A DNA stretch of 64,000 bases from Diplonema japonicum (GCA_964019335.1 OZ025709.1:248001-312000), one strand, 5' to 3'; shown: positions 3,063 through 58,261, counted from the stretch's first letter. Translations and numbers: made by a program. Notes: generated from the letters alone by a model not told the origin.

Positions 3063-3145
3063 TCCTCTCGGCCGGAATCGAACCAGCGGCCGCGCGATGG
3101 CTAACATTCTACAGTCGCGCGCTCTACCAATTGAGCTACGAGAGG
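3063..3145 (-). tRNA. tRNA-Tyr(GUA) with 10-nt canonical intron
   Basis: Minus strand reads CCTCTCGTAGCTCAATTGGTAGAGCGCGCGACTGTAG[AATGTTAGCC]ATCGCGCGGCCGCTGGTTCGATTCCGGCCGAGAGGA. Full cloverleaf with A/B boxes and intron at 37/38. Confidence 0.95.
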
Positions 3146-3151
3146 CTTCGA

Positions 3152-3430
3152 TTTTTTTTGCAATAATAACCACTGGGGGAAAACTGGGGGTGGGGGGAGG
3201 GGTGTGGGGTGTGTCCAGTCTTTTGTCTGGAGTAACCGAGAGGGCCACCACGTGGGCTGAACCTTCCCTTCGGTGCTCCGTTCCCCCCTTCCTGGGACAG
3301 CCGACCTGGCTGATTACATTCGGGGCGGTCCCCTCGAGGCTGAACGCAGGGGCGTTCTCTTGCTGCGCCCTGCGCCCTCCCGGCCTTCCCTGTGGCTGCC
3401 TCCCGGGAGGTTGTTTCTTGGCCCATTTGC

Positions 3431-3477
<47 letters not shown>

Positions 3478-36558: not shown

Positions 36559-36625
36559 TTTCTTAAAATTTTTTTTTCCAAAGTGTTGTTCTCAGAGTGC
36601 CTTTTATTTGAAAAATATAAAAGAA

Positions 36626-36699
36626 TATTCCCATCCGGGTTCGAACCGGAGACCTTCGCCGTGTTAAGGCGACGTCATAACCAACTAGACCATGGGAAC
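36626..36699 (-). tRNA. tRNA-Val(AAC)
   Basis: GTTCCCATGGTCTAGTTGGTTATGACGTCGCCTTAACACGGCGAAGGTCTCCGGTTCGAACCCGGATGGGAATA; full cloverleaf. Confidence 0.95.
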
Positions 36700-36704
36700 T
36701 CACG

Positions 36705-37620
36705 TTTTTTTTTTAATAATAATAATAATTATTCCACTACCAGGCGGGGGGGATGGGGGGCGGAGAAAGTTGAAACCATAAAAATTGGGAAGGGAAGGTT
36801 AAAAACAGTCTCTCTTACTGAGCCATATCGGGGGGGACCTCTTGCTCGTTTGCTCGACCTCTTGTATATTTTCCTGGGGCCCCCGACATCCACCTTTCTT
36901 ATTTTTTCCCCATTCCCCCGCCACGCAGCTCTTGGGCCTCGAAGGCTTCGGCTGTCACCAAATAAAGACAACCCCAAATATTAAAGGACGGCGATGAGAT
37001 CCCTAATTTTGATTTATCCAGCCACAGGGACCCCACCATCTGCTGGTTTTGTTGGGCTGTGGGAGCCTAAAATATAAATTTGAAAAGGAAATGTAAAAGG
37101 AAAAGTCAAGTTCAGAACTCAACTTCCACAAAGAAGGGAGGAATGCATAACTAGAAAAGGAGCCTGGTAGGGAAAATAAAAAGAAAGGGAAACCAATGGG
37201 GGAGGGGGAAAAAGAATTACTGGTTACTATTTCTAAAAAAAAAAAACCCCCTTCTCAGCTGCGAAAGATGTTTTTCCAACGAGACTCCCTATCGCGTAAT
37301 GACGCGGGCGCACCAGGTAGGCCGGCGAGTGCTGTGGAGTCAATCGTCAGCGGGGAGGAAGAGGTTGTGAGAGGCGAAGTAGAGGAGGGGGGCACGTTGG
37401 CAGATAACCCACCGGCCTTGGGTTTTTTTTTTTTTTTTTTTTTTTTTTTTCAAAATACCAATGCAGGGCCGCCATGGAGAGCAACACCTGAGAAAAGGGG
37501 AAAAAAAGGTGAAGGGAAACCATGGGGAAATAGGGAGGGCAATGGACCAGGCTTCTGCAAGCAGGAGGAGCCCTGGTCCCCCACCAACCCGTGCTCTGCT
37601 TTGGGACAGCCGAAGAAAAT
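36705..37620 (-). mobile_element. Non-autonomous retroposon (internal-deletion derivative, RIME/NARTc-like) related to LINE-C
   Basis: Its 5' ~170 bp (37445-37615) is homologous to 50590-50755, and its 3' ~370 bp (36715-37075) to 43810-44225. It has a (TTA)n-poly(A) tail and is flanked by ACG. Confidence 0.82.
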
Positions 37621-38160
37621 ACGTTTTTTTTAATAATAATAATAAATGAACCACTGACGTGCGAAGCAAAGGCTGGGGGGGGGGGGACAGAACAGGTGGA
37701 CCAAGGGTCTCCCTGTATCTAACGAAAGGGGGAAAGGAAAGGAATGTGATAACCTTGAAACTTCCGCTAAACTATCCATACGTACCGAGGACGGAGGTGG
37801 GGCCGGTTCGTGGGCTCCAGTGTTCGCGACTTCGCCCACCTCCGTGACCCCGGCAGCTCTCCAGCCCGCTTCCCAAGCCAGCACCCTTCGGGCGAACCTC
37901 CGGGTTTTTGAGGAGTGGGGTACCTCGTCCGTGCTCGCCCTCACGAGCGGCACACTGGCACGGAGGCATCCCCTTCAGCCAGCTTTGTTGGGCGGCGGAG
38001 CCTTAGAAAATTCAAAACAAAGGGAAATGATACGGGGGGATGTGTGAAGGGGCGGGGAAAGGTGAAGACAGAAGTTGGGGTGCACGACAGGGTAATAATG
38101 GGAAACACAGGGGGAGGGGGAGAGGGTTCACTAGTACTTTTTGGTTCACTTTTTTCTGTT

Positions 38161-38196
<36 letters not shown>

Positions 38197-38241
38197 CTAC
38201 GTCCTGCGATTGCGGTCAGCGGCTCGGCGGTCGTGAGAGTC

Positions 38242-41200
38242 TCAGATGAGGTCCATCCTCTTCAGGTAGGAGGCGGTTTCACTCACCCTCATTGTGAGCA
38301 TCTCCTTCGTGGTCGTGGGGATGTCATCCCCGAAGATCTCTTCGCGGACCTTGTCTCCAGCTGGGCACCCGATCAGCAGATGGTGTCTGTCCTGGATCGA
38401 ATGGCACGAGAGGCAACGTATGTCATTCTGGACGGGTTTCGACAGGAAACCGCAAGTCAGGTGGCTCCTGCCCGTTCGCAGTCTCGTTATCTGTACCTCA
38501 TCGTGTCTGCAGGACAGTTCCTTCAAGGGGAGGTACCTCGCGCCGATCTCCTCTCGGTACTTCTTGTCCCGACCCGTCTTCTCCCACGAGGCTGCCCAGT
38601 CGCGGTTCACCGACCTCTTGATGAGGCTCTTTGTGGTCATCAGGTCCGTCGGTCCGTCCGGTGTCGACTCCTTTGCGGCGCGTTTGGCGTGTCGGTCGGC
38701 TTGCTCGTTACCTGGTAGGCCGCAGTGTCCGGGAACGTACTGGATGATGGTGGAGAGGCCTTGGCGGTCAAGCGCGTCCAGCCATTTCCAAGCCAGCAGT
38801 TCCTCCTTCTGCCTCATCTCTCTGTGGCCCTGCATCAGTCTTCTGATCACCGACTGGGAGTCCGAGCACAGCAGCACTACTCCGGTCGTCACACCTTGTC
38901 TCCGGGTATGGTACAGTGTCAATTGCAGCCCCAGGTTCAGCGCTTTCAGTTCGCATCGGTAGGCCGAAGTCACTGCTCCTCCGCTCTTGCGAGCCTGCTT
39001 CGGTGTGTCAGACCCGATCCTTATCACAGCTGCCGAACCGCCGTTCCTGTGTCCGGTGACTGACCCGTCGGTGTAGACGATCACATCTGGGATGCCGTGC
39101 CTCCTGATCGATTCGAAGGCCGCTCGGAGTTTGAGACTTTTTTCGTCCTTCTTGTGTACCTTGCGGACTAGGTCGGGGTGGAACAGGACTTTGGGTTGGA
39201 CCCATGGAGGGAGCTGCAGGTCTGCGCTCTGAGTGACTGAGTGGTGTGGTAGGTCTTCGCGTTCCGGCATCCCGTGACTCTTCGCCAAGTCGAGCGCGGT
39301 GTTTCGCCAGCTTTTCCCGTACCACATCTGACCCCCGGATATCTTTGTTGCCTTCTCCGCTGTCGTCCCCGGTTGACGCTGTGCCTTCTCGTAGAGCACC
39401 AGGGTGTCGTGTTCCAGCAAGGATTCAATCTCCCAGATGCCCGCCTCTGACCTGGTCACCGTCGCGGAAGTCTTGTCGAAGCATCCCGTTATCAACCTCG
39501 CTGCTGTGTATTGTAGCGAGTCGAACTCGGCCAGAGCAGCATGTCCCACGAAGTTGCCGTAAGCACCGAGACAGTAGCGCAGAACCGGTTGGACGTACGT
39601 CAGGTACAGCGTCCTTAGGGTGTGCTTGCGGCAGCCCCACCTTGTTCCGGCGAGTTTGCGCAGCAGGCGAAGACGGCTGTTGATCTTTCCCTTCACCTTC
39701 TGCACATGCTCGTGGAAGTTCATGCTTTCGTCGAAGGTGACGCCAAGATATTTAGCCTCGCGTACCACCTTGACTTTCGCCCCACTCGAGGGGAAGCGGG
39801 CGTTGATGAGGTTTGCGAGACTGTCGTGCGAGTTCCAGAACTGTCCCTCTACCGGCATGAACTCTGTCTTTTCCTGGGACAGTTTCATCGAGAACGTCTC
39901 GCACCATCGCTCCGTGAGGCTCACCGCGCGTTGCACCTTCTTGTTCAGCTCGGCAGGACTCCCCGCCTCCAGCACTATCGCTATGTCGTCTGCGTACACT
40001 ACCGCGTCGATTCCAGCCTTCCTGTACAACCTGGCCAGGTCGTTGACGTAGATGGAAAAGAGCTGCGGGGCCAGGATGGTGCCTTGGGGTACGCCCCCTG
40101 TCATTGTCTTCACGCAGCCGTGTTCCCCGTTCACACAGACGGAGGCTTTACGTTGGTCGAGGAAAGAGGTGATCCATTTCACGAGCTTGGGAGGGTATCC
40201 GTCGCCTATCAGCTTTGCGATCACTCCCTTGTGCCAGACTGTGTCGAAGGCTCCTTTGAAGTCGAACAGCAGGAGACCCCCCAGACCTTGGCTCAGTCTG
40301 ACACTTTTGAGCTTTGAGGCGGCGTACAGCACGTTTTCCTCCGTGGACCTCCCTTTCCGGAAACCCGCCTGCGATGTGTGCAATTGCCTTACCCGTCCTG
40401 TGTCCTGCAGGAAGCACATCCTGTCCTTGACTATTCGCTCCAACGTCTTCACGATGTTTGACGTCAGCGCGATCGGCCTGTACGAGGCGGGTTCGGATTG
40501 GTCTTTGCCCTTTTTCATGAGGGGGATGATGGAAGACCGCCTCCATTCGGCAGGGACGACACCGGTCTGGAGGGATGAGTTGTAGAGGAGGAGTTGAACT
40601 TCCCTGGCCACCGGTCCCAGGTACTTCAGCATTTCGTTGTAGATGCCGTCTGGGCCCGGAGCCTTGCCCTTCTTCAGCCTTCGCAGCACCGAGTCCAGCT
40701 CGTCCTTCGTTACCAGGGGGAAGTCGTTGTCTGTCCCGGGCTTCGCGTCCTTCTTGATGGTGGTGATCACTTCCTCCGACTTGGCAGTCGTCCTTGGGGA
40801 GCAGGCCCTCGCGTAGTGTTCGACGAGTACACTGGCCTTCTCCCTGTCGGTGGTGGCGATACCGTTTCCTCGTCGGAGCGGGGCTATTGGTGGCTTCTCG
40901 CTGCGACCGTCGAATCTGCGGATGACCGAGAAGGCTTGCGTCAGGTTTCCGTCCTTGGACAACTTCTTGGTGTAGTCGCCCCAGGCAGCCTGCTTCCCGC
41001 TCGTTATCGCCCTGTCCAGCTCAGCCTCCATCGCCGCTAGACGTGCCAGGTCTTCGTCGTTCCCGTCGTGATCCTCGGACAACAGCTTCGCCTTCAGTGT
41101 GCTTCGTCGCCTTGCGAGTGCGTCAATCTCGTCGTTCCACCAAACCTTCCCTTTCTTCTGTCCTTTCCTGGGGACGCACGATTCGGTTGCCGATAGAAGA

Positions 41201-42570
41201 AGAAGTGTGCGAAACTCAGCGTTTAGCCTTATCGGGTCTCTGGCCCTGAGCAGCCTGCTGCACTTTTCTTCCATCGTCTCCCTGTACGCGCTCCTTGCCT
41301 CCTTCCCCCAAGAGTAGAGTACTCTTCTGGTCGGTTGGCTGACTCCCCCTCTCAGACTGAAGAACATCGGAACGTGGTCTGAGCCCATTGCTGGCAACGT
41401 CCTCCAAGAAGATTTGTCGAACTCTGCGCCGCTCATTACCATGTCCGGAGAGGTTGGGTTTCCTGACGGGTTCAGGATCGTGGCTTCGCTGCTCTTGTTC
41501 CATGTGCTGTAGCCCCATCGCAGCATCCAGCTGTGCAGTATTTCTCCCAGCTTATTCGGAGTGCCCCTTTTGTCCCACATCGTGTGGTGGGCGTTCATGT
41601 CACCGGCGATGATGGTGTAACTGTCATGAGGCAGCTCTGCCGGGCGGAAATATTTCTCGGGGGGTGGTCTGTCGTCGCCGTCTCTACCCGTTGTCGGAGG
41701 CAGGTACAGGTTGACGAGTCTGTACGGCTTCCGGTTGGGCAGCGAGATCTCTACGTCGAGTCTTTCCGTCACGTCGCTGGGTTTCTGAAGAACTTCGATC
41801 TGTTTCGACGGTATCGATTCTCTGACCAGTGTGACGAGACCCCCTCCGCTGATTTGCTTTCCTCTTTTCACCGGTCGTGTTCGGTCTCGGCGGTATGCCT
41901 TGAACCCAGTGAAGACTCCGGTTATATCTTTCGACGGCCTCAGGAAAGTCTCTTGGAGTAGGAGCACGTCGATGTTGTGTGTCTCAATGCCCTTCAGCAG
42001 CTGCGCTGTGGTGCTCACCGTTAGGGATCTGACATTGAGAGACAGTACGTTGATGTTGTTGGGTGGTGGTGTTGTGTTGGAGTGTGCCTGTGAGAGAGAG
42101 GAAGTAGAGGGGACGGGAGGGAGAGAGTGTTCAACTCTTGTTGTCTTTTCGGTGGTTGGACCGGGGTTCGCTTCTATGTCCCCGCAGCTCAGTAAGTGTT
42201 TTCCGTGCGGACCTCTGGCTGCGGGATTTCTGCGAATGTGAAGATTGCCTGTGTGGTCACCCCTAGGTCCAGGCCTTTGGATACTGGGTAATACTTCGTC
42301 ACCGGTGACGGGAGTTTGTGAGTGCTTGTTTGGGGAGGAATTGTGCGTGGAGAGAGGGAAAGATGAGGGATGGTGATGTGGTGATGATGTGCTGCCTTTG
42401 CGGTCACCCCAGCTTCCAGGGCTTGAGAGGCTGGGTAGTACTTCATCTTCGTTTAGATGGGGTGTAGTGTTGGGGGTTTGGGAGTAGGGACAGGGAGTGA
42501 GAGACGGTGTGGGAAAGGGGGTGAAAGGGGTGTTGAATGAGATTGCACGGCCCTTAGTACTGGCCTTCAA
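38242..42570 (-). CDS. LINE-B ORF2: 2A peptide, AP endonuclease, reverse transcriptase, RNase H, Zn finger
   Basis: LLSCGDIEANPGP; SLNVRS, LQET, GDMNAHH, SDH; YRPIALTS, PQGTIL, YADD; YTDGS, CSDSQS, HCGLPGNEQAD; CLSC..H...C. Confidence 0.93.
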   Translation of the reverse strand: MKASTKGRAISFNTPFTPFPTPSLTPCPYSQTPNTTPHLNEDEVLPSLSSPGSWGDRKGSTSSPHHHPSSFPLSTHNSSPNKHSQTPVTGDEVLPSIQRPGPRGDHTGNLHIRRNPAARGPHGKHLLSCGDIEANPGPTTEKTTRVEHSLPPVPSTSSLSQAHSNTTPPPNNINVLSLNVRSLTVSTTAQLLKGIETHNIDVLLLQETFLRPSKDITGVFTGFKAYRRDRTRPVKRGKQISGGGLVTLVRESIPSKQIEVLQKPSDVTERLDVEISLPNRKPYRLVNLYLPPTTGRDGDDRPPPEKYFRPAELPHDSYTIIAGDMNAHHTMWDKRGTPNKLGEILHSWMLRWGYSTWNKSSEATILNPSGNPTSPDMVMSGAEFDKSSWRTLPAMGSDHVPMFFSLRGGVSQPTRRVLYSWGKEARSAYRETMEEKCSRLLRARDPIRLNAEFRTLLLLSATESCVPRKGQKKGKVWWNDEIDALARRRSTLKAKLLSEDHDGNDEDLARLAAMEAELDRAITSGKQAAWGDYTKKLSKDGNLTQAFSVIRRFDGRSEKPPIAPLRRGNGIATTDREKASVLVEHYARACSPRTTAKSEEVITTIKKDAKPGTDNDFPLVTKDELDSVLRRLKKGKAPGPDGIYNEMLKYLGPVAREVQLLLYNSSLQTGVVPAEWRRSSIIPLMKKGKDQSEPASYRPIALTSNIVKTLERIVKDRMCFLQDTGRVRQLHTSQAGFRKGRSTEENVLYAASKLKSVRLSQGLGGLLLFDFKGAFDTVWHKGVIAKLIGDGYPPKLVKWITSFLDQRKASVCVNGEHGCVKTMTGGVPQGTILAPQLFSIYVNDLARLYRKAGIDAVVYADDIAIVLEAGSPAELNKKVQRAVSLTERWCETFSMKLSQEKTEFMPVEGQFWNSHDSLANLINARFPSSGAKVKVVREAKYLGVTFDESMNFHEHVQKVKGKINSRLRLLRKLAGTRWGCRKHTLRTLYLTYVQPVLRYCLGAYGNFVGHAALAEFDSLQYTAARLITGCFDKTSATVTRSEAGIWEIESLLEHDTLVLYEKAQRQPGTTAEKATKISGGQMWYGKSWRNTALDLAKSHGMPEREDLPHHSVTQSADLQLPPWVQPKVLFHPDLVRKVHKKDEKSLKLRAAFESIRRHGIPDVIVYTDGSVTGHRNGGSAAVIRIGSDTPKQARKSGGAVTSAYRCELKALNLGLQLTLYHTRRQGVTTGVVLLCSDSQSVIRRLMQGHREMRQKEELLAWKWLDALDRQGLSTIIQYVPGHCGLPGNEQADRHAKRAAKESTPDGPTDLMTTKSLIKRSVNRDWAASWEKTGRDKKYREEIGARYLPLKELSCRHDEVQITRLRTGRSHLTCGFLSKPVQNDIRCLSCHSIQDRHHLLIGCPAGDKVREEIFGDDIPTTTKEMLTMRVSETASYLKRMDLI

Positions 42571-43774
42571 CCTTCCTTTTTACGGGAGGGTTCACCTTGT
42601 GCAGGGGCGTTGTCTGCGAGGGGGTGGTGTGTAGGGTTGTCTGCCTTGTTGTGGCAACTCCTACGAGCCTTTCGGCTGGTGGGGGGGTGTCGTAGCATAA
42701 AGGTGCTACGGTACCCTTTCTCTCCGGTGTCGCAGCGTGCCTGGGGCAGTCTGGGGTGTCAGTCCCCTCGTCAGCGCCATCGGTGGACGGCACGTGTCCC
42801 CTCTGTTCTGGGGACCCGTCTGCCTCCTCGGAGGTTCCTGGTGGGGGGGCTCCTGTAGTCAAGTGGATGAGTAATCTGTTCATCCCTTGCTTCAGCTCCT
42901 CCACCGACCGCTCCGTCCTCTCCGATGACGCCTTCAAGGAAGAAATCTCCCCCCTCAGGCCACCAAGCTCGCCCTCCACCAGGCCCACCCTCCTGTTCAG
43001 CTCCTCAGTCCTCTCGTCCGTACGCACCCCTCTCATCTCCACCTCTTCCACCTTCCTCTCGCACGCCTTCTCCCACAGCCCGGCCTGTTCCCTCGCCTGC
43101 TCCAACTCGGCAATCCGCCTGTCCATGGCTTCCCTCCAGCCCCAGTCGTCCTCCATCCCGCCTCCCTCTTCCTTCTCGGCGCTCTCCAGCGCCTGGATCC
43201 TCGCCTCCAGCTTCTCCTCTCTTTCCCTGGCCTCGGCCTTCCTTTTTGCGGCTTTGGCCCCCTTCTCCTCTCTCGCCTTCTTCTTCCTCCCCTCCTTCTC
43301 GTCGGCCAGCTCCCACACCTGCGACCAGCTCGCCCCCCCGAACTCCCTGCGGAAGTCTATTTTGGTCCCTCTACGAGACCCACCCGGTAGTTTCCTTTTA
43401 AAGGATCCCTTCTGCTCCTCGAACACCACCTTATGGGTAGTGTCTCCGTCCCTCACTGAGTAGGACTGAAGAGGGGGAGTCCCTGTGGTTACGATGGTGC
43501 CTAGGACACCGTCGAACCTCATCGACTTCCCCAGTCCAGCCTGCGCAATGAAGGCCGCCCACGTGGGCTTGGGGGCAAGCGGGGCTACGACTGCGTCGTA
43601 GTGCTTCCGGGTGGGCTTCGTCTTGGGGGTCGTCTCGGGGGGGGTCTTTCTGATCACCACCTCGGTGGTTTGCAGCACTAGCTGCGGCGGGTCTTGGTCG
43701 GGCTCGCTCCCGTCCGGTAGGGGCCCCTTGGAGGCGCCCGCCTTGCTCGGCTTCGTCATTTTGTCACTTGACAT
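42554..43774 (-). CDS. LINE-B ORF1 (coiled-coil)
   Basis: 406-aa ATG-initiated ORF with a central heptad coiled coil, directly upstream of and overlapping ORF2. Confidence 0.75.
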   Translation of the reverse strand: MSSDKMTKPSKAGASKGPLPDGSEPDQDPPQLVLQTTEVVIRKTPPETTPKTKPTRKHYDAVVAPLAPKPTWAAFIAQAGLGKSMRFDGVLGTIVTTGTPPLQSYSVRDGDTTHKVVFEEQKGSFKRKLPGGSRRGTKIDFRREFGGASWSQVWELADEKEGRKKKAREEKGAKAAKRKAEAREREEKLEARIQALESAEKEEGGGMEDDWGWREAMDRRIAELEQAREQAGLWEKACERKVEEVEMRGVRTDERTEELNRRVGLVEGELGGLRGEISSLKASSERTERSVEELKQGMNRLLIHLTTGAPPPGTSEEADGSPEQRGHVPSTDGADEGTDTPDCPRHAATPERKGTVAPLCYDTPPPAERLVGVATTRQTTLHTTPSQTTPLHKVNPPVKRKVEGQY

Positions 43775-44273
43775 TTTTTTTTTTTTTTTTTTTTTTTTTT
43801 ATTTGTTTTTTTTTAATAATAATAAAAATAAATATTCCACTACCAGGCGGGAGGATCGAAGGGGAGTAGAGAAAACCATTCAAGGGAAAGGGAAAGGGAC
43901 ATCACTTCAAACCAAGAGAGGTGTTTGAAAGTGATTCGTGAAAAGCAGTCTCTGTTACTGAGCCATTGGTCGAGGGGTCCTGGTCCGCTGCTCCCTGTAG
44001 TAAATTACTTGGACCCCCTCACCACGCTCTTTTCATAATAAAATAAAACCGATCCCACCCACCAGGCAGCACCTGGGTCTCGAGGCATTAGCCGCCTCTA
44101 GTAACAAGAGACGACCTCCCAGATTTTAAGAACTTTGGAGGAGTTTCAATTGTGAAAAATTAACCAGCTGACTGTGAAACTCCACCGTCTGCTGGACTTG
44201 TTGGGCTTTCGGGAGCCAATAAATTCAATTCAATTAAGTTTCGTTCTTCAGTTTTTTTTTTTTTTTTTTTTTT

Positions 44274-44306
<33 letters not shown>

Positions 44307-44635
44307 TTTTTCTCAAAATAAAGGAATTCAAATCAAGCTCGATTGTGTACACCGAAGCTTGAATCATCTGTCCTTCTTTTTTTTCTTTTTTTTTTTTTTT
44401 TCTTTTTTCTTTCTATATGAAAGGTGAGTGAAAAATTTGAATAACACTGGGGGCGGGGGACAGGGGCCTGGTAATGGAAAATAAGGGAAGACACTGGGGA
44501 GGGAGGTGAAAAGAAAGGATAGGAGTGAAGCCAGAGTCGAGAGATTGAGTTAGAAACAATTGCTGTCTGAAGTCGTTTAACAACTTCAGACCTCAATGTT
44601 TGGAGAGTATAACATATTATAATTTATAAGTTTTT

Positions 44636-48619: not shown

Positions 48620-49074
48620 GTATGTCACTCTGCCTTTGTGGTCACCCCTACCTTCAGGTCTTCGAAGATAGGGTTGTACGACTTGGGGGGGGCCGGCCCT
48701 AACAGACCTTACGTCGCCACCACTAACGCCTTGTCCCGTTTGGACACCCCTATACGTGCGGGGCCGGCCAGGATTTAGCCGCGAGTTGTAGCCAAGTCGT
48801 ACGAGCTTCCTTCGCGCAGAGAGATGACATTGCTGTGACCCGTTGTCGTCGTCGTCGTCGTCGTCGTGTATTATTTTTTTTTTATTTTTATATTTTTTTT
48901 TTGTTGTTTTTTTTTTTTCTCTTGTTCTTTTATTTTCTTTATGTTTTTTTTTTTGTTTTTGTTTTTTTTTTTATGGTTTTTTTTTTTTTTTTTTTTTTTT
49001 ATTATTTTTTTTTTTGTAGACGAATTGGGGGCTTAATAGGGAAACACTTTCTTTTTTCTTTTTTTTTTCTTTCT

Positions 49075-50430
49075 TATCTATTATGGTAAAATGGAAAAAA
49101 CTTATCACCTTTTTCACCTCTTCTTTGATTTTCCGCCTTTCCCGGACTTCTTCGCTGTGTCCGGTGTGCTCGGTGTCGGCGATGTCGAGGTGGAGGAGGA
49201 GGTTGTCCCCTTCGAACCCTTCGAGCCCCCTGGTGCGTAGGGCGCTGCCTTCAGCGACACCTTTGCAGAGGCCCATTCCTGGCCCCTGCGCCTTCCTGGT
49301 TTTGCTCCGGCGGGAGTCTTCCAACTCCGTTTCCGAGCCCGAGGATGGCTGGTGTTGCTGTGGGGTGTTCGGTTCCAGCTCCGGTCCGATGAATTTGGAC
49401 GGTGTCGGGGCTGTGGGTGTGGCGGTGGTTTGGGCCTTTTTGGCCTTTAGGGCCGTTCTTCTGGCGGTGTCCCTCGCGTCCCGCTCCTCCTGCTTGGCCA
49501 TCATGGCACGCACCCCTTTCTCCAGAGCCTCCTGTTGACTCCTCAGCTGCTCCATCAGAGCCGGGAGGCTGGTCCTGATCTCTGCCAGACCCTCTCCCTG
49601 CTTCCGCAGCTCCTCCCCCTGCACACTTACCTGTTTCTGCAGGGGTTGGATGCTGGTCTGGACGGCTGCCAGTCCTTCCCCCTGCTTCAGCACCGCCTCC
49701 CCTTGCGCACTGACCTGTTTCTGCAGGGCCGGGTAACTGGACTGTGCTTCTGCCAGAGACGTCCTCTGTCTCTGCAGTTCCTCTCTCTGCGCGGTGATCT
49801 CCTGTCTCTGCGCCGAGAGTTCGGCCCTCTGCGCCGCAACTTCTTGATGCAGATTCTGCATCTGGGCTACCATATCTGGCGAGATTGTTGCTGTTGTTGG
49901 GGGGGCTCCTGTGTGTTTTTTTGGGGTGTGGCGGTCCTCTTCCTCCACTCTTCTACTGCCTTGCAGTAGAGCTGCCACCCTACCGACCGGCCGTAGAATT
50001 CCAGAAATTCTTCTGGGCTGTACCTGTCTTGGTGGACTTTTGTTCTTTTTTTTTTTTCTTCCCCCTTCCTCGACCACTTCTTCCCTCCTGCAGCCCTGGA
50101 CTCCAGGGGGTCGGCCACCTTTATCGCCGGCAGGACTTCTGCCGTGGCGCCGTTCACCTTGATGCAGGTGTGGTGGGGGGGGGTGCGTGCGGTGTAGAGG
50201 AGGAAGGACGCGCCTTCCGTCGTCAGGATGACGACCTTCTCGGTCTGCTCTGAGACCGTTGCTGCGAGAATCGCAGCTGCGCCCTTCTCCTCCACTCCCT
50301 TCGGCAGCGGACCGATGATCCAGTTGCCCTTCCGCACCTCGTCCTTTTTCTCCTTCTTCTTCTCTTCTTCTTCTTCGAATACCAGATTTAACTCTGGCAT
50401 CGCCGCGGCGTCTTCGTCCACCTGCATCTG
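49075..50430 (-). CDS. LINE-C ORF1 (coiled-coil), frameshifted at a homopolymer
   Basis: ORFs 49867..50631 and 48971..50077 overlap. YSPEEFLEFYG..W motif, then a Q/E-rich coiled coil with a 21-aa internal repeat. Ends uncertain. Confidence 0.55.
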
Positions 50431-50448
50431 CAGGCTGTCCAGTGGGGG

Positions 50449-50570
50449 CCTCGTGGAGGCGTCCGCGCTCGTGGAGGCGTCCGCCCGTTTTTTTTTTTTT
50501 TTTCGCGCTCGTGGAGGCGTCCGCCCGTTTTTTTTTTTTTTTTTCGCGCTCGTGGAGGCGTCCGCCCGTT
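50449..50570. repeat. Tandem repeats (cgcgctcgtggaggcgtccgcccg + T-run) in the LINE-C 5' region
   Basis: Four copies of ctcgtggaggcgtccgc, three followed by poly(T). Confidence 0.8.
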
Positions 50571-51306
50571 TTTTTTTTTTTTTTTTTTTTTTTTCAAAAT
50601 ACCAATAGGTGCCACCATGGGGGAGCAACACCTGGGAAGGGGAAAGGTGAAGGGAAGCATGGAAATATTACAGGGAGGGCGAAGACCAGTTCTTCTGCAA
50701 TCAGATGGAGCTGTGGACTCCGCCAACCCGTGCACCTGTTTGGAACAGCCGAAGAGGGCTGAATTACTTTAATTCCAAGCCGCGTAGACCTACGTGACTC
50801 GGACGGGGACCTTGACCCCAGTTCGTCGTTTTTCTCAACTGGGACCTCTGGTGACCGGAACTGGCCCCGGTCGCCCCCTCGAGAGGGATTTGCTCCATTG
50901 AGCGAAACATGAAAGGGTGAGAGTAAAATCTCTCAAAATCAAAAGGGGAAGCGAGTGTGCGTGTGCGCATGGGGATGTTAGGGGAAGCATTTGCTCTCCC
51001 CGCTGCACTCCGGCTGGCGGGGGGAGGGGATGGCCGTACCACACTCGTTCGTGCGAAGATGAGAGGACTCATCTGGGCAACTTCAGAGTAGGCCGGGCCA
51101 TCCGTTTTTGACTACAATGTCAGGGCACACGATAACAAGAGGATGTTAATTTTAAAAATTTAAAAGTTTAAAAGGGGACGGGCATACTGGTAAGAGAAAG
51201 GCCAGACGCCGGATGATGATAAAGAAAAGGATGAGAGGGAGTGGAAGAGAGGGGAAGGGAACGTAAGCACTAAAAGAATTGAAATGTTGATCTCACCCTA
51301 CTCACT

Positions 51307-54300
51307 TCAGCGCAACACGGGGGCCGCAGGGCCGGCGTCAAGGGAGACAGCCGGCGGGATGAACGAAGGGGCAGCGGTACCTGCCGTTGCCGCAGACGGC
51401 GACGTGAAGACCCCGGATCTGGCCCAGTCAAGCAAGCCAGAGTCGGCGATGAGGGTGAATACCTGCGTCACGCGTTTTGACAGGCACTCCACCAGCGAGG
51501 GGCGTCCATTGGGAGCGTCGAGCGAACCCCGTCCAACCACAGCGCACCCCCCAACAACGTGCTCCCTGGACATCTTTGCTCCACACGCTGGGCAGCTGAG
51601 CTCAGCCTTCTTCCTGTTCGGTCCAGCCGCCTGCAGGAAGCCGAAGAAGAGAGCGGAGTGCCCTACCCTCAGCCGCGAGATGACCGTCTCCGCTAGCCTG
51701 GGGAGGGACTGGGGGAAGCACGCCGCTCGGAGCCCCGTGGCCCTCGCGTATCTCGGGGCCACCTCCCCGACAATGACCGCAGACCTCTGCTGAATCTGGC
51801 GACGGACCAGGGCCCTGACCGACCTGTAGTCGAGAGAGGGGCGAGTCAGCTCGCGCTTCGTGCCCTCCCCGGCCAGCCTGTCTGCCGCCTCGTTGCCAGG
51901 AACCCCGCAGTGGGACGGCACAAACTGGAGAATGACTGGTGCACCTTGTGCACGTGCCGCGGCCACCAGCAGTTCCCAGGTCTCGTGGTCGAGCCTCTCC
52001 CTCTGCCGCGAAGGACCTGCCCTCAGCTGATCAAGGAGAGAGAGCGAGTCGGTACAGATCGACAGCCGGCTGTCTGCCAACGTGGGGTGCTCGCTCCGGA
52101 GCGCGGCCACCATGTCCAGAGCCACCTTGACAGCCAGACCCTCCGCCCGAAAGGAAGAGCAGAAATTGCTGACGCCGAAGCTCTCGGACACGGGTTCGTG
52201 GGGGCGGGGGAGCTGCAAGTAGACCCCGGCGCCGCCCCTCCACCTCTGGCGGTCCCGTACGACAGAACCATCCGTATAGGCATGGATACCCGGTGGAAGG
52301 GCAGCCAGAGCCTCCACGGCCGCCTTCCGCTTATCCACGTCCGGCGACGAACGCGTGACCCTGCCGGGAAGGGCAGTTCTGAACTCCACCAGGAACGCGT
52401 GCCACGGTGCTACTTTGGGCGAGGCAGTCAGTAGCTCGAAGGTGTCGTACTTCCTGAAGCCTTCCTGCGTCGTCCACCCCTGCAGTCCGCAGCGTCGTAG
52501 CGCAAGGATACCCGCACGCAGTCACCCATTGCCCATACCGGTCATCCGCTTCTGCTCAAGGACCTCGCGGTGAACCGGGGAGGTCCTCCAGCAGAACGAC
52601 TTCGCCGTCAACACCGCCGCAGCTCCCTCAGCCATCTGTCGGAGGGGTAGCAGACCTGCCTCAGCAACAACCTTCGCCGTGCCCGAGCCGTGCCAACAAC
52701 CCGAGATCAGCACCGCCGCTCTCTGGTGGAGCCCAACGAGCTCCTCCACCCTGCTGTCCCTGAGCCTGGCAAAGTAAACACCCATGCAGTACCGGAGTAG
52801 CGGGAGAACGTACGTGAGGTACAGAGATCGGAGCGTGGCCTTCTTGCACCCCCAGGTCGTGCCCGACAGGAGCCTTAGTACCCTCAGCCTCTTGTCAGCG
52901 CGCCTCAGGACATCCCCCGCATGCTCGTCAAACGTGAGCCCAGAGTCTACAGTGACCCCAAGATACTTCGCCGACCCACACAGAGGCAAGGGGCGAGCCG
53001 CCATGTAACCAATGTCGGACCTCCGGATGGCGGCGGGAATGTCGAAGGACCGTTTGCCACCCGCCTCCACGACCCGAAAGCCAGACAGCTCACGGACGCC
53101 AGACAAGGTCCCACAGGCCCCAACCCCAAGATTAAGGACAGGGTCCTGGAAGGCCCCCGGGCAAAGCGGGACACGCGACGAAGAGAAGTAGACATTAAGC
53201 CGCTTCTGATAGGGAACGCACACTGCCTGCGACTTGCTGGAGCTCAGCAGCATGCCCCGTCTCCCACACCAGCCCTCAACCGCGTCCATCACAGCCTGGG
53301 CCCCTCGCTCAAGACCAGCCAGGTCGCCCTGCCCGGCTGAGACCACCACCGCAACATCGTCGGCATAAAGAACCGACAGGTCCGCCATCCCAACCAGCAA
53401 CCTGGCTAGCTCGTCGACGTAGATGGTGTAAAGGACGGGTCCCAGCACAGACCCTTGGGGCACCCCTCTCCTCACCTTCGTCGTCGACCCTCGCGAACGA
53501 CCCACCGTGACCGCCGCCGTACGACCGCAGAGGAAGGAGCGCGTCCATTCGACGAAGGGCTCAGGGATCCCTTTCCTCCGCATCATGCCCAAGAGAGCTT
53601 CGTGCTGAACCAGGTCAAACGCAGATGAGAAGTCAAACAGCAGGGCAGCCGACAGACGCCGACTGTCTTTGTTCCTCGACAGACACCCGGTCAGGGACGC
53701 CACCTGCTCCTCCGTGGAGCGGCCCCTCCTGAAGCCAGCCTGGCTGTCGTGGAGACCCTCAACGCCCGACGCGCTAGAGTCTAGGAGAAAGGTAAGCCTC
53801 TCCTCTATCATCCTCTCAAGCAGCTTACAAAGACAGCTAGTGAGACATATGGGACGGTACGATGCAAGCAACGTGGCGTCCTTCCCTGCCTTCGCCACTG
53901 GAACAATCACCCCCTTCTTCCAGGCACCCGGCACGATCCCCGCCTGCCATGAGCGATTGAGGAGCAGAAGTAGAACCCCGAGCGAGGGTTGGTCGAGGTG
54001 GAGAAGCATCTCCGCGAAGATGCCATCATCACCCGCTGCACTGCGTGTCTTCATCCTTCCCAGACCGCGGGTGAGATCATACACCGTAAAGGCGTGGCAC
54101 CCAAGCACGTTCGTCGAAGGAGCTACGTCCACCGCGTCCCCATCACCACCCTGGCCGTAGAGCTTGCCGAAGTGAGCCCCCAGGCGGTCGGCTTTCGCCT
54201 TGTCCGTCACGAACCTCCCCTCGAGAATGGGAAGGTGCGGTCTGCGGTGTCTGCCGTCCAGCTTCTTCACCGCCCTAAACGCAGACCCGAGGTCCTTGCT

Positions 54301-55518
54301 CCGACTGAGGTCAGCCGCCATCTCACCCCAGGCCGCGCGCTTCGACTCGGTCATGAGTTGGTTTACCTCCTTGACCTTCGCCTTGTAGACCGCCGCCACG
54401 CTGTCGTCCTCAGTCTCAGCCGACTTGAGGAAGCGATCCCGCAGGGCGTTCCGTTCTTCGAAGGCGTCTTCGAGTTCGGCCGTCCACCAGGGGGTCGGGC
54501 CTCGTCGCACTCCGCAAAGCGGAATGTGGTCGTCAGCTGCATGCAGAAGAGCCTCTGTTACCTCCTTCGTGAAGGAGTCAATGTGGGCCTTCGTGTCGAT
54601 CTTGGTCAGAAGGGCAGCGGCGGCCGCGGTGAAGTCGTCCCACCTGGCCTTTTTGAAGTTCCAGGTAGGGCAGGGTCGCTCCGAGCAGTAGGCGTCCTCA
54701 AGCGGCAGGCGGAAGGAAACCGGGCTGTGATCAGAGCCCCACGTCCCCAACGTCCTCGGCTCCAGTTCCGCACAACGTCCCACCACCAGGTCCAGAACGC
54801 ATGGCGGTGAGTCCCGCGTCGGCTCGTCACGGTTGTTGTAGACCGTGTAGCCGTGGGTGTCAAGCCAGTCCCTGACCACGTTCCCCCTTTCGTTGGGCGT
54901 TGTCACCTTGGCATCCCAAGAGCTGTGGTGTGCGTTGAAGTCGCCAGCAACGATCGTGTTCTTCCCCACAGGTAGGCTGCCCGGCCGTAGGTACTCGGGG
55001 TCCCTTGTCCCTCTGCTTATACTCACAGGCGTGAGGTACACGTTGGAGAGGGTGACCGGGACGCGCTTCACACAGGAGATCCTCACGTCTAATCGCTCGG
55101 TGACACTGTCACCTTCAGGGAGTACGAAAGGAGCTTCCTCCGAGGCAAGGCAGTCACGGACATACGTGATGACACCACCGCCTCTCGTCGCAGAGCCGTC
55201 CGTCACCGGTGTTGTGCGGTCCCTCCTGTAGGACGTGTATCCAGGCAGGTATGGTGTCTCATGCCCCTCCCTAAGGTGTGTCTCCTGGATCATAATGATA
55301 TCCAGCGTCAGTAGGACAGCGTGGTAGGACACGGTTGACCACTTGGCGGCAAGACCGTTGCAGTTCCAGGACAGGACCCTGAGTCCCTTCGGCTTCGGGG
55401 GTGGGAGCTTCTTAGGTGGACCGGGGTTCGTCTCAACCAGCCCAAGCAGCCCCAGCAGGTCCCTGGCCGACATCCGTTCAAGTAAGGAAGGGATCAAGGA
55501 AGGGAGGACGTCGTACAA
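51307..55518 (-). pseudogene. LINE-D ORF2 interrupted by a single in-frame TGA
   Basis: ORFs 52522..55518 and 51307..52389 share a frame. The stop in GNG*LRAG aligns with the Trp of KSWRN/RTWSD in LINE-B/C. Motifs GLVETNPGP, SWNCNG, YADD, YTDGS. Confidence 0.85.
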
Positions 55519-55614
55519 GTGATGTGGAAGGTGTCTCCTCGGCTGTATGCGCGGGAGACCAGGAGAGGGGGCGTGGTCGTCGATCTGACGCCCCCCCTGC
55601 TCAGCGGGACCCCT

Positions 55615-57789
55615 TCAATTGGCAGGGGCGGGGGCCGGGCCCACAGAGGCTGCCCGTCCACGGCCGGCCCCGTTGGGGGAAGCAGAGTCGCCAGCCAGCG
55701 ACTGGGCGCGTCCCCTTCCGCCCCCTTGCTCCGTCGATGTCGGGTAGGGGCCTGGAGTGCTTACGCCCTGCGCCTGGTGCCCCTTCGTCCCTGCCTTGGA
55801 CCCAGCCTTGCCGCCCTTGCCCTTCCCAGCAACTGCCGTCCGCCCAGCACCGTCTGCAGATGACGCCGGCGCGCCAAGTGACGCTGCCATCTTCTCCTGG
55901 AGGTCGCGGACCGTCGCCTGCAGACCGTCGATGGTCGCCTGCATCGACTGGATCAGCGCGAGGAGCGCCGGGACCTCAGGTTCCGGTGCGGGATTCTTCT
56001 TCTGGGAGTCACGGGGAGGTGTCGTGGTCGGGGAAGCCGCAGAGGAGACCGGAGTCACAGTGCCAAGTGGCGGAGGGGCAACAGAGCTCGGTGGAGATGA
56101 CCACGGATTGGTGCTCGGCAGCCCTGTGGACTGCACCGTGGGGCCAGGGGCCGGCGTCGGCGTCTGGGCCGTGGTTGCCGCAACCGGCGTCCGAGCCGCG
56201 GGTGGAGCCTTCTTGTTGGTGCGGGGCGGGAGCGTGACGCTCGGGTGGTCTTCCGCGTCGTGCAGTCGAACGAGACGAGAGCCGAAGAGCCATGTCCTGG
56301 CCTTGGGGGGCGGGGCGTCGGCGACGATGAAGAACACGAGTTGCCTCGTGCCCTGGAACGCCGTGTCAGAGCGTCGGATGATGGACGACGGCTTCCAACC
56401 GATGTGGTCCATCATCCCGTCGAAGGCTGCCCTGGTAACAGACAGCGGGGCTCCGGTGAGCAGGTACCGTCGCTTTGTCCTCTGCTTGGCGAGGGCCTCC
56501 CTCAGACGCTGCTCCGTCTCCGGCAGGCACCTCACGGTCCAACCCTTGCGATGGGCCACCCCCAGGGACAACCCGCCCAGTGCCTTCGCCAGCTGGAAGG
56601 CCTCCGCCCTCCCCTCCGCTACGATGGGCACGTAGGTGTACCCCCCGCGCCGCTCGGTCGTCCTGACCATGCAGCCGTCGCCCGAGGCCCGGAGTACCGC
56701 ATGGACGGATGCCGCCGGGAGCCGCAGGCCCACCTCGTGGCTCCAGTGACGCGCCCGCGGCTCGTTCCCGTCGATCTTCTTCGGGCGGAAGATCGCCTGC
56801 TCCTCCACCGCCACGCCCTGGGTCGCGACGAGGTCCCGAACCCTGGCCTTCGCCGCGTTCACGCTGTCAGCTTTCACGCTGACGTACACTACCTCAGAGC
56901 CGCCATCGAAAGAAGCGAGTGGGGTGTAGGAGGGGGGGTTCGACCCGACCGAGAAGGTGTGCACGGCCTTGTGCACGACACGCTGGCCGGCGAGCACGAT
57001 GACGGTGCATGGGGTGGTCGAACCGGCAACCTCCGTCAAGAGGACGAAGGTCAGGGAGGCCGTGGGCCTCGCAGTGCGAATCGCGTCCACCTGCTGGAGG
57101 TCGTCGAGAGCGACGACGGCGCGGGGCACCTCCTCAGGGGGAGCAGTGTTGGTGTAGATGGGGGCGTCCCACGTGTCGGGGACCAGATCCCAGCGAGGCT
57201 CTGGGGCCGGTGCGGGAGCGGGGGCCGTGTTCTCGTCGGTGTCAGAGTCCGACATGGGGAGGGCGGTGTCGCAGGCAGCGGCAGTGAGGACGGCAGTAGA
57301 CCACACGGCAGCAGTAGGGGCTGGAGCCGGAGTAGGAGCAGTGGTGTCAGCAGTAGAGGCTGGAGCAGGCGCAGGAGCAGTGGTGTCGGCAGCAGCAGGT
57401 GCAGGAGCAGTGGTGTCGGCAGCAGCAGTCCTCATCCTCGCCCTCCTGACCTCTGGCGTGTCGACCGTGAACGAGGTGAAAACGCCCGGCGACTCGCTAA
57501 TCAAGACGACAGAGTCGTCGGAGCCCGAAGCAGCGGCGGCGGCGGCGGTGGCAGCGTCAGCAGCTGCTGCCTTCTGTCTGGCCCTTCTGGCCGCCTTCTT
57601 CCCTTGCCCGGGGGAGGGTGTCACCACCGGCGTGACCCCCTCTGCGCGCTTCCTCTCCACCTCCTCGCGCGTGCGCTTCGCCCTGGCGGCGGCGTTGTCC
57701 TTTACCCGCTCCCCGCGGGCTTTCTCCAGGATTTCCTCTGTCCTGGACTTGTGGTGTGGGGGCCTCTTCTTCTTGCTGGAGGTCGACAT
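55615..57789 (-). CDS. LINE-D ORF1 (gag-like; Ala/Pro/Thr-rich linker, short C-terminal coiled coil)
   Basis: ATG at 57789 (MSTSSKKK) opens a ~724-aa frame ending ~100 bp before ORF2. Confidence 0.7.
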   Translation of the reverse strand: MSTSSKKKRPPHHKSRTEEILEKARGERVKDNAAARAKRTREEVERKRAEGVTPVVTPSPGQGKKAARRARQKAAAADAATAAAAAASGSDDSVVLISESPGVFTSFTVDTPEVRRARMRTAAADTTAPAPAAADTTAPAPAPASTADTTAPTPAPAPTAAVWSTAVLTAAACDTALPMSDSDTDENTAPAPAPAPEPRWDLVPDTWDAPIYTNTAPPEEVPRAVVALDDLQQVDAIRTARPTASLTFVLLTEVAGSTTPCTVIVLAGQRVVHKAVHTFSVGSNPPSYTPLASFDGGSEVVYVSVKADSVNAAKARVRDLVATQGVAVEEQAIFRPKKIDGNEPRARHWSHEVGLRLPAASVHAVLRASGDGCMVRTTERRGGYTYVPIVAEGRAEAFQLAKALGGLSLGVAHRKGWTVRCLPETEQRLREALAKQRTKRRYLLTGAPLSVTRAAFDGMMDHIGWKPSSIIRRSDTAFQGTRQLVFFIVADAPPPKARTWLFGSRLVRLHDAEDHPSVTLPPRTNKKAPPAARTPVAATTAQTPTPAPGPTVQSTGLPSTNPWSSPPSSVAPPPLGTVTPVSSAASPTTTPPRDSQKKNPAPEPEVPALLALIQSMQATIDGLQATVRDLQEKMAASLGAPASSADGAGRTAVAGKGKGGKAGSKAGTKGHQAQGVSTPGPYPTSTEQGGGRGRAQSLAGDSASPNGAGRGRAASVGPAPAPAN

Positions 57790-57817
57790 GTTTCTTTTCT
57801 TTTCTTTTCTTTTCTTC

Positions 57818-57974
57818 CCCGGGTAGCTGGGTAAATACGCCCCGGGTAGCTGGGTAAATACGCCCCGGGTAGCTGGGTAAATACGCCCCGGGTAGCTGGG
57901 TAAATACGCCCCGGGTAGCTGGGTAAATACGCCCCGGGTAGCTGGGTAAATACGCCCCGGGTAGCTGGGTAAAT
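57818..57974. repeat. Perfect 23-bp tandem repeat (cccgggtagctgggtaaatacgc), ~6.8 copies
   Basis: Identical units with no spacers, immediately upstream of LINE-D ORF1. Confidence 0.95.
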
Positions 57975-58212
57975 GTCGGATCATTGTATGAATATTGCGA
58001 TTGATTAAAATATGTTGAAAGAAAGTCGCAATCACGATTTAAATAACCTGTGGCCTTTCAAGAAAAGTCCACTCCTTCCTCTCGGGTTTGATTTTTCATC
58101 GGTGGACTCGTTGTGTCACAACTTTTTATTTAAGGCTTTTTTGAAATTTTTATTTTTGAATTTTTATCATTTGGAGTTGCCTCTTCTTCTTCCCCTCTCC
58201 CTCCCATAAAGG

Positions 58213-58261
<49 letters not shown>

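Follow-up and report, generated by a model that had tools for sequence, protein, structure and literature searches.

The 5′ flank of a tRNA-Val(AAC) gene of the marine protist Diplonema japonicum is occupied by an array of about 21 kb in which five retroelement pieces are arranged head-to-tail in the order LINE-D > LINE-C > LINE-B > D2 stub > NA, a non-autonomous element, followed by the tRNA. Very probably this array was built by target-primed reverse transcription five times in succession at one and the same site, presumably under the guidance of the Pol III complex on the gene. The array lies in a stretch of 64,000 nt (GCA_964019335.1 OZ025709.1:248001-312000), referred to here as the window, to which all coordinates apply (Table 1); the ends of the array elements were placed by alignment to other copies in the genome. 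Families B, C, D, D2, E and others make up a clade of related APE-type LINEs in D. japonicum that have been active recently.

Table 1. Retroelements and tRNA genes of the window, with the evidence for each assignment
Feature	Position	Strand	Evidence
tRNA-Tyr(GTA) with intron	3063..3145	-	ARAGORN run with -i
Degenerate family-E LINE	3152..7290	-	tail, ORF2 comparison
tRNA-Val(AAC), target gene	36626..36699	-	ARAGORN; Rfam RF00005, 60.3 bits; sequence
5-nt leader CGTGA, last tail to tRNA-Val +1	36700..36704	-	sequence
NA, non-autonomous element, 3′ 718 bp of ~1.34-kb element	36705..37422	-	genomic copies
D2 LINE-family stub, 194 bp, 5′-truncated	37423..37616	-	copies at 97-100% identity
Junction filler CGTATTT	37617..37623	-	sequence
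LINE-B, full length	37624..43800	-	Pfam; motifs; comparison of genomic copies
LINE-B ORF2, 2A CGDIEANPGP, APE, RT, RNase H, CCHC	42570-38242	-	Pfam; motifs
LINE-B ORF1	43774-42554	-	
LINE-C	about 43806..50568	-	Pfam; motifs; comparison of genomic copies
LINE-C tail GGTAGTGGAATA(ATT)nA9	43806-43843	-	
LINE-C ORF2, 2A CGDVEQNPGP	48628-44636	-	Pfam; motifs
LINE-C ORF1 region, two overlapping frames	50631-48971	-	
LINE-C 5′ end, 41-nt tandem units	50448-50568	-	
LINE-D	about 50569..57819	-	Pfam; motifs; comparison of genomic copies
LINE-D tail GGTATTTTGA26	50569-50603	-	
LINE-D ORF2, two parts split by one TGA	55518-52522 + 52389-51307	-	
LINE-D ORF1	57789-55615	-	
23-bp tandem repeats (n=7), LINE-D 5′ edge; membership in element uncertain	57817..57977	-	

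All five pieces are in the orientation of tRNA-Val, adjoin one another and show no nesting. A reading made from the sequence only had described a stack of four elements, and its head-to-tail, single-orientation and un-nested organization is borne out, but the count has to be raised to five, as the D2 stub at 37423-37616 had been overlooked. The tRNA-Val(AAC) gene is apparently intact, with T-runs 3′ of it. As that reading had stated, the last tail stops 5 nt short of the gene: its final base is 36705, and the CGTGA between it and +1 of the tRNA is a spacer belonging to the most frequent class genome-wide. The copy of NA in the array keeps the last 718 bp of the element and ends in the tail (ATT)5A10. 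Full-length NA is ~1.34 kb long and begins with AGGGGTCCGATTACACAC, and its 3′ module, when aligned to those of LINE-C and LINE-B, resembles the LINE-C one. At least 19 copies of NA are present in the genome at 96-100% identity; copies without a tRNA have a 5′-truncated LINE within the next 5-15 nt, and an Rfam search around the NA copies found no other Pol III gene. The D2 stub terminates in GGTATTTTGA28, and its copies elsewhere are the 3′ end of a LINE with an ORF2 region ~72% nucleotide-identical to LINE-D. Between the D2 tail and NA, at 37423, there is neither a visible spacer nor a target-site duplication (TSD). On the other side of the stub, the first three nucleotides of the junction filler (CGT) match the leader CGTGA and make up a short TSD; the recurrent ACG-T-run junction previously placed at 37621-37631 does coincide with the true end of LINE-B, although the repeat itself is reduced to this 3-nt match.

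The ORF2s of LINE-B, LINE-C and LINE-D all contain Exo_endo_phos, RVT_1 and RNase_H domains on the minus strand (Pfam) in a common 2A-APE-RT-RNase H-CCHC order, the 2A-like NPGP motif being present in all three. Protein identity between the ORF2s is 43% (B/C) and 35% (B/D), and no similarity was found among the ORF1s of the LINE families compared. In LINE-B, an internal poly(A) occurs in the 3′ UTR at 38163-38196, and the true end of the 3′ module is the (ATT)nA8 tail at 37624-37655, with more than 25 LINE-B copies terminating at the identical base. LINE-B and LINE-C have uninterrupted ORF2s, and that of LINE-D is broken by a single in-frame TGA near 52522, where three other copies have TGG (a private TGG>TGA change), so the most distal element is indeed the only one with a broken ORF2, as the sequence-only reading held. 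The hallmarks of non-LTR elements are present, namely APE together with RT, A-rich 3′ tails, frequent 5′ truncation and TSDs, and neither LTRs (repeat check) nor an integrase domain (Pfam) was found in the array pieces. The best 120 homologues come from diplonemids, metagenomes, molluscs and barnacles, and an Atlas search bore out the domain set. Since copies at 99-100% identity are numerous and a EukProt transcript (P0001) is 99% identical to the LINE-C ORF2, we read these families as recently active.

The window contains a second targeted gene. The tail of the family-E LINE, CCAGTGGTTATTATTGCA8 (3152-3176), ends 6 nt before tRNA-Tyr, and its ORF2, now in three pieces, is 47% identical to that of LINE-D. 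Across the genome, the association with tRNA genes is likewise clearly positive. Among the 63 best-scoring Rfam RF00005 matches, which were chosen regardless of retroelements and from which all fractions are estimates, 24 (38%) have a retroelement tail 1-18 nt upstream, always in the same orientation. The occupied sites comprise 18 tRNA species and at least six tail families. That several divergent families share the site, as had been supposed, is confirmed by the tails of B, C, D, D2, E and at least one further family, plus NA, each of which is found at other tRNAs. The element copy lists hold the best ~40 scored matches each, and counts taken from them are therefore lower bounds. D/D2 tails lie at most 16 nt upstream on the same strand at 11 of the 63 tRNAs, against a chance expectation of ~0.0025, calculated from a genome-wide total of 154 exact D/D2 tails.

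The spacer lengths are bimodal: one group spans 1-8 nt and peaks at 5, the other spans 11-15 nt and peaks at 12, and no spacer of 9-10 nt occurs. The -5 class accounts for ~18 of the 33 measured tail-to-tRNA junctions; the anticipated position at -5/-6 is thereby recovered, with the second class at about -12 appearing besides. The examined loci contain 91 distinct tails, 33 of which adjoin a tRNA, 2 a tRNA stub and 52 a same-strand repeat, with 4 left unclassified, at least two of these being element junctions when inspected; unique non-tRNA DNA was not seen after any of the 91. 5S is probably a target as well: going by coordinates alone, a D2 tail stands ~6-9 nt upstream of one 5S gene. No U6 gene adjoins a tail among the tails listed, and no tRNA was found on the short contigs of 80 metagenome loci with related ORF2s. 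The leaders of unoccupied tRNA genes are GC-rich between -18 and -15 and follow a weak consensus nearer the gene, with T at -6/-5, C at -4, G/T at -3 and A at -1; many spacers start with YGT.

The TSDs carry the evidence on how the stacks grow. Nested TSDs built from the tRNA leader are found at the loci L057, L064, L068/L036, L071, L086 and L016, for instance TGTGA (L057), GTGtC (L071), GCATATTCTCG (L086), TACCTCAAACAT (L064) and CCAACTC (L016). At one site the TSDs form a three-step series, gcccaaTATTTCGCATC > TATTTCGCATC > GCATC, and its unoccupied paralogue (L074) reads ...cagtatttcgcatc|tRNA. Some TSDs extend 6 or 45 nt into the tRNA. Therefore, new insertions land beside the tRNA and older ones are pushed away, in agreement with the displacement proposed in the sequence-only reading. 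For the window's own stack, a 3-nt TSD and a non-significant substitution trend weakly suggest the same order of arrival. Private substitutions number 0/718 nt in NA, 0/2348 nt in LINE-B, 2/2258 nt in LINE-C and 2/2091 nt in LINE-D, that is 0/3260 for the proximal against 4/4349 for the distal part, which is not significant; the direction fits divergence rising with distance from the tRNA, but the numbers are too small.

Insertion thus proceeds as follows. Integration takes place in the orientation of the tRNA, with the first nick on the tRNA template strand ~5 or ~12 nt before mature +1 and the second at the 5′ end of the tRNA or just inside it, because of which the TSD equals the tRNA leader. 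The tRNA and its leader come through each insertion intact, and hence the site can be targeted again, every new arrival shifting the older copies further upstream in a head-to-tail stack. A LINE-C-like 3′ module is borrowed by at least one non-autonomous partner. Since every insertion brings new DNA to the upstream side, and since the targets comprise 18 tRNA species and probably 5S, we infer that the determinant would be the Pol III transcription complex (TFIIIB/TFIIIC) on the gene rather than DNA sequence, by analogy with TRE5-A and Ty3, and that the insertion address would be the Pol III start site. ORF2 is likelier than ORF1 to carry a shared targeting function, because it is conserved across families whose ORF1s are unrelated. 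Given the weak leader consensus, sequence may make some contribution to the choice of nick.

Could a sequence-specific endonuclease, reading a short motif made of the tRNA leader and the first tRNA bases with no Pol III tethering, account for the same data? The site-specific APE-type LINEs R1, Tx1 and Keno do recognise DNA sequence, and both the non-random leaders of unoccupied genes, with their GC-rich stretch, and the YGT starts of many spacers fit such an enzyme. However, its motif would have to be met at 18 tRNA species with differing 5′ sequences, and probably at a 5S gene too; nicks fall at two separate positions spaced by 7 nt, sites of the -12 class share no sequence, the leader consensus is weak, and re-targeting persists once the whole upstream region has been replaced. 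We consider this explanation improbable. Far less probable still is that the A/T-rich tails of earlier elements are the real target and build the stacks, with tRNA adjacency being secondary. It is true that the majority of tails are followed by another element and that some junctions, such as that of the D2 tail with NA, lack a visible spacer, but the TSDs between stacked elements copy the tRNA leader and not the tail, the element next to the tRNA invariably stops at -5 or -12, no tail runs into unique non-tRNA DNA at the examined loci, and first insertions at unoccupied tRNA sites are left unexplained. Lastly, it is scarcely credible that the array arose by mis-joining in the assembly or by copying of a segment rather than by independent insertions: although it exceeds the typical HiFi read length and 95%-identical versions of its D>C and C>B junctions are present on C44 and, in two places, on C61, its elements belong to different families and so offer no long repeat to mis-join, the same architecture is seen at more than 20 other loci, and the assembly combines HiFi with Hi-C at QV 59.4 (PMC13598402). 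Segmental duplication was rejected as an account of these repeated junctions, because the C44 stack is composed differently (NA > 5′-truncated LINE-C > LINE-B); the shared adjacency is therefore to be expected from a few active families at one site.

Targeting through the Pol III complex admits an extension, which we regard as rather doubtful. The AT-rich tails, (ATT)nA(n) and TATTTTGA(n), standing at -5/-12 might replace the TFIIIB/TBP-binding stretch of the promoter, while the Pol III complex would fix the second nick with its edge at +1, so that each insertion would rebuild a working promoter that can be targeted anew, a self-renewing landing pad. If this were true, ~40% of the tRNA genes of D. 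japonicum would be transcribed from upstream DNA supplied by retroelements.

The closest known system is NLTR-A of Dictyostelium purpureum, a non-LTR element inserted 2-6 bp upstream of tRNAs (Spaller et al. 2016, PMC5006619; review PMC5911963). By its description there (PMC5006619), NLTR-A shares with the present elements APE, RT, a downstream RNase H and two ORFs, and the -5 class of D. japonicum falls within its 2-6 bp range. The hosts differ (Amoebozoa versus Discoba), and the 2A motif, the -12 mode and the use of one site by several families are not mentioned for NLTR-A in the consulted passages of PMC5006619 and PMC5911963; in D. japonicum, 38% of the sampled tRNAs are occupied and stacks reach up to five layers. 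The precedents named in the sequence-only reading, Ty1/Ty3 and TRE, rightly made tRNA-adjacent targeting a known phenomenon but omitted NLTR-A, the nearest one (PMC5006619). Given this precedent, the system of D. japonicum is a new lineage of a known strategy and not a new kind.

Dictyostelium TRE5-A is an APE-type non-LTR element inserted in fixed orientation upstream of tRNA genes and also at 5S genes, whose targeting depends on the Pol III complex, box B being needed and ORF1p binding TFIIIB (PMC5911963). The elements of D. japonicum are alike in type and in fixed orientation upstream of tRNAs. They differ in their spacers (1-18 nt versus 40-54 bp for TRE5), in having RNase_H in LINE-B, -C and -D where TRE5, of the L1 clade, has a zinc finger, and in that ORF1 is implicated in the targeting of TRE5 whereas the ORF1s here are unrelated across families. 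Yeast Ty3 and Dictyostelium DGLT-A use TFIIIB to integrate only a few bases from the Pol III start site, ~15 bp ahead of the mature tRNA (PMC5006619, PMC5911963); their precision and safe-haven logic are comparable, but they use LTR plus integrase chemistry, without poly(A) tail or 5′ truncation. Kinetoplastid ingi/L1Tc begin with an N-terminal 2A-like peptide, continue with APE, RT and RNase H, and carry a zinc motif at the C-terminus (PMC3708506, PMC5814959). Their hosts are euglenozoan too, and LINE-B, -C and -D follow the same 2A-APE-RT-RNase H-zinc motif order, with ORF1 + ORF2 in place of one long ORF. For the Pr77/HDV-ribozyme 5′ hallmark of ingi/L1Tc, Rfam gave no counterpart and no ribozyme match in 36200-58400 at E<=1, a search that a diverged HDV-like/Pr77 copy could escape. 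We know of no tRNA specificity in ingi or L1Tc.

Targeting of Pol III genes is a textbook case of transposons that have evolved to spare their host, and yeasts and dictyostelids are, to our knowledge, the only groups in which its position-specific form has been elucidated. LINE targeting upstream of tRNAs is apparently unreported for this branch of eukaryotes. D. japonicum would add a third and very distant lineage (Discoba), pointing to convergence on the same solution, and with it a whole clade of active LINEs sharing one trick at base-pair precision, whose natural insertion series would read out both nick positions. It would offer a compact, culturable organism for studying how the Pol III complex is recognised by an APE-type LINE. 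For the annotation of diplonemid genomes, the flanks of tRNAs are to be treated as stacks of transposable elements, which may hold tRNA stubs derived from long TSDs.

The retroelement array upstream of tRNA-Val is real, and its boundaries were determined by searching the genome with queries spanning each junction. The minus strand reads ...GGAATAATTATTATTATTATTAAAAAAAAAA, then CGTGA, then +1 of the tRNA, placing the last tail 5 nt from the gene as the sequence-only reading had it. Five pieces make up the stack rather than the four counted there, in the order LINE-D, LINE-C, LINE-B, D2 stub, the non-autonomous element NA, CGTGA and tRNA-Val; the stub is the extra piece, and D2 is a LINE family with ~72% nucleotide identity to LINE-D in the ORF2 region. 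As had been claimed, the pieces share a single orientation and adjoin one another, with none nested. The tRNA-proximal piece, taken for a non-autonomous derivative, proved to belong to an element with at least 19 near-identical genomic copies.

Features of the tRNA-Val stack and its surroundings in the window
Feature	Position	Strand	Basis or remark
tRNA-Tyr(GTA), intron-containing	3063-3145	minus	aragorn -i; missed by the default tRNA search
~21-nt-period arrays	34000-34215; 59529-59786		94% alike, 25.5 kb apart
NEDD8/ubiquitin-like gene	36400-36560	minus	GT-AG intron
tRNA-Val(AAC)	36626-36699	minus	ARAGORN and Rfam
NA		minus	last 718 bp of a ~1.34-kb element with start AGGGGTCCGATTACACAC; genomic copies
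D2 stub	37423-37616	minus	194 bp, between LINE-B and NA; separate heavily 5′-truncated copy
LINE-B	3′ end 37624	minus	(ATT)nA8 tail; >25 copies, 97-100% identity, same end
LINE-B 3′ module	37624-38160		
LINE-B internal poly(A)	38163-38196		genomic copies continue through
LINE-C	3′ end 43806	minus	genomic copies cross internal A-tracts and stop there
LINE-C 3′ module	43806-44250		
LINE-C internal poly(A)	44252-44311		
LINE-C ORF1 region	48971-50631	minus	two overlapping frames, stop/start overlap ~49867-49874
LINE-C 5′ tandem repeats	50448-50568		41-nt units with A16
LINE-D	~57819 (start) to ~50569-50585 (end)	minus	ends of other genomic copies
LINE-D 5′ tandem repeats	57817-57977		23-nt units
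Contig-end repeat	58060-58222		between host gene and LINE-D 5′ edge

Each of the three long minus-strand ORFs contains Exo_endo_phos, RVT_1 and RNase_H domains. A 2A-like motif stands at the start of ORF2 (CGDIEANPGP in LINE-B, CGDVEQNPGP in LINE-C and LVETNPGPP in LINE-D), and a CCHC motif closes it in all three. ORF2 is open in LINE-B and LINE-C; only the most distal element, LINE-D, has it broken, as had been noticed, by a single TGA that is TGG in three other copies. The LINE-C ORF1 layout, whose LINE-B counterpart is one ORF, may reflect a frameshift or be characteristic of the family. In another LINE-D copy, a (GAAAA)n-type simple-repeat match takes the place of the 5′ tandem repeats. 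In LINE-B and LINE-C the internal poly(A) is followed by a ~450-540-nt 3′ module also present in NA. The NA module (~400 nt) can be aligned to the LINE-C one and, less tightly, to the LINE-B one; the blocks common to all three are GGCTCC..GCCCAACAA, ATGGCTCAGTAAsAGAGACT and (ATT)nA(n). The module has the look of a 3′ recognition module, either acquired or shared.

The association extends genome-wide, as had been proposed. In a sample of the 63 best RF00005 matches in the genome, picked regardless of repeats and retrieved with 3 kb upstream, a retroelement tail ends 1-18 nt before tRNA +1 in 24 cases, always on the tRNA strand; such occupancy figures are estimates from the sample. Several families do use the one site: D2, D, B, C/NA, the further LINE family E and at least one more were found at these tRNAs, and 18 tRNA species are targeted. 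A genome-wide count of the exact D/D2 tail word gives 154, compared with 0 for the reversed control; 11 of the 63 tRNAs have it within 16 nt, against ~0.0025 expected by chance. D/D2 tails are strongly clustered, concentrating in a small number of stretches tens of kb long on C51, C52, C61, C13-C15 and C18, which suggests tRNA/TE islands. A second targeted site lies in the window itself (3063-7290, minus), where the tail of a degenerate family-E LINE ends 6 nt upstream of tRNA-Tyr.

From the element side, all fetched loci were scanned and duplicates dropped, leaving 91 tails, a survey biased by two thirds of the loci having been picked as tRNA flanks. The neighbour is a tRNA for 33 tails, a tRNA stub for 2 and another repeat for 52; the script left 4 unclassified, of which one is the LINE-D/LINE-C junction of the window, one adjoins a B-like element and two have similar downstream sequence. 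A tail followed by unique non-tRNA DNA was seen in none of the 91. Of the NA copies whose tail is complete (~22), 10-11 run directly into a tRNA, and in most of the others a same-orientation 5′-truncated LINE begins 5-15 nt after the tail. No tRNA was present at metagenome loci with related ORF2s, which are short contigs.

Tail-to-tRNA distances have a bimodal distribution: one class spans 1-8 nt (mode 5), the other 11-15 nt (mode 12), and none is 9-10 nt. Between elements stacked within one retrieved locus, the filler repeats the leader of the tRNA at that locus: TGTGA at L057, GTGGC versus GTGTC at L071, GCATATTCTCG of GCATATTCTCGAA at L086, TACCTCAAACAT at L064 and CCAACTC at L016. One tRNA-Ile site has a three-step series, gcccaaTATTTCGCATC -> TATTTCGCATC -> GCATC, and its unoccupied paralogue reads ...cagtatttcgcatc|tRNA. 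These loci establish the position, orientation and target-site duplication (TSD) structure of the insertions, the re-use of occupied sites and the breadth of tRNA targets. Read under target-primed reverse transcription, the leader-repeat junctions place the first nick at -5 or ~-12 on the tRNA template strand and the second at +1 or just inside, and they mean that each later insertion landed on the tRNA side of the tail already in place. The nested TSDs give direct support to the earlier proposal that older copies are displaced away from the tRNA.

The duplication extends 6 nt into the tRNA at L083 and 45 nt at L052, where a tRNA half remains. The stub at L052:1129-1175 is the 45-nt 5′ half of tRNA-Arg, and 'ggatcgatcgtggtctagtt...' tRNA pieces follow tails at L003, L019 and L052:2277. 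Such stubs are best explained as long TSDs reaching into the tRNA, a source of tRNA pseudo-fragments.

For the window stack, the evidence on order of arrival is thinner than at other loci. The recurring junction claimed at the LINE-B tail holds as to the tail end, and the CGTATTT that follows matches the CGTGA leader in CGT only; no duplication is visible where D2 meets NA. Private substitutions (NA 0/718, D2 0/194, B 0/2348, C 2/2258, D 2/2091) run in the direction expected if divergence rises with distance from the tRNA, as the displacement model has it, and the difference is not significant. Both the D>C and the C>B junction are found again at other places, with 95% identity. Block duplication as their source was rejected on the make-up of the C44 stack (NA > truncated C > B); given this different composition, the recurring adjacency fits a few active families on one common site. 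The elements have been recently active, many copies being 99-100% identical and one transcript being 99% identical to LINE-C ORF2.

What do the elements recognise? A D2 tail lies ~6-9 nt upstream of a 5S rRNA gene (C52:246942-247060), with a LINE-B fragment just downstream, by coordinates only, which suggests that Pol III genes besides tRNAs are also targeted. We infer recognition of the Pol III complex because targeting persists though every insertion puts new DNA in place of the entire upstream region, because tRNA 5′ sequences vary among targets, and because of this one 5S case. Against pure tethering, a weak leader consensus leaves room for some endonuclease sequence preference. Across the families of the stack, ORF2 proteins share 35-43% identity, and identity to the LINE-D protein is 47% for the family-E copy next to tRNA-Tyr, whereas BLASTP found no similarity between the ORF1s. 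Since only ORF2 is similar between families, a common inherited targeting function would more likely reside there.

Around the stack, the repeat at its distal edge, which matches one lying no more than a few kb from the ends of many contigs, looks subtelomeric. The two ~21-nt-period arrays bracket the whole tRNA/stack region, and the NEDD8/ubiquitin-like gene shares the strand of tRNA-Val and starts ~60 nt downstream of it. The assembly comprises 62.5 Mb in 132 contigs; the genome note for strain YPF1604 (GCA_964019335) reports PacBio HiFi and Hi-C data and QV 59.4 (PMC13598402).

tRNA-gene targeting is established for Ty1, Ty3 and the dictyostelid DGLT-A and Skipper-2, and, among non-LTR elements, for TRE5 (40-54 bp upstream), TRE3, NLTR-B and NLTR-A (PMC5006619, PMC5911963). 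The precedents named by the sequence-only reading, Ty1/Ty3 and TRE, are among these, and NLTR-A of D. purpureum, which it did not name, is the closest analogue, with APE, RT and RNase H and insertion 2-6 bp upstream of mature tRNAs. TRE5-A targeting is tied to ORF1p, which binds TFIIIB (PMC5911963), whereas ORF2 is the likelier carrier in Diplonema japonicum. Kinetoplastid ingi/L1Tc resemble the stack LINEs in domain order with an N-terminal 2A (PMC3708506) but, unlike them, show no specificity for tRNA genes. By similarity search, the closest proteins among the matches listed belong to diplonemids, molluscs and barnacles or derive from marine metagenomes. Searches of the full-text literature turned up no description of a tRNA-targeted retrotransposon from a diplonemid or another euglenozoan; the sequence-only reading likewise knew of none in euglenozoans. 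The earlier interpretation is thus supported: the system is a new lineage and clade on a known safe-haven strategy, not a new kind of system. Its nested-TSD evidence is unusually clear, and the finding matters moderately to highly for transposon biology.
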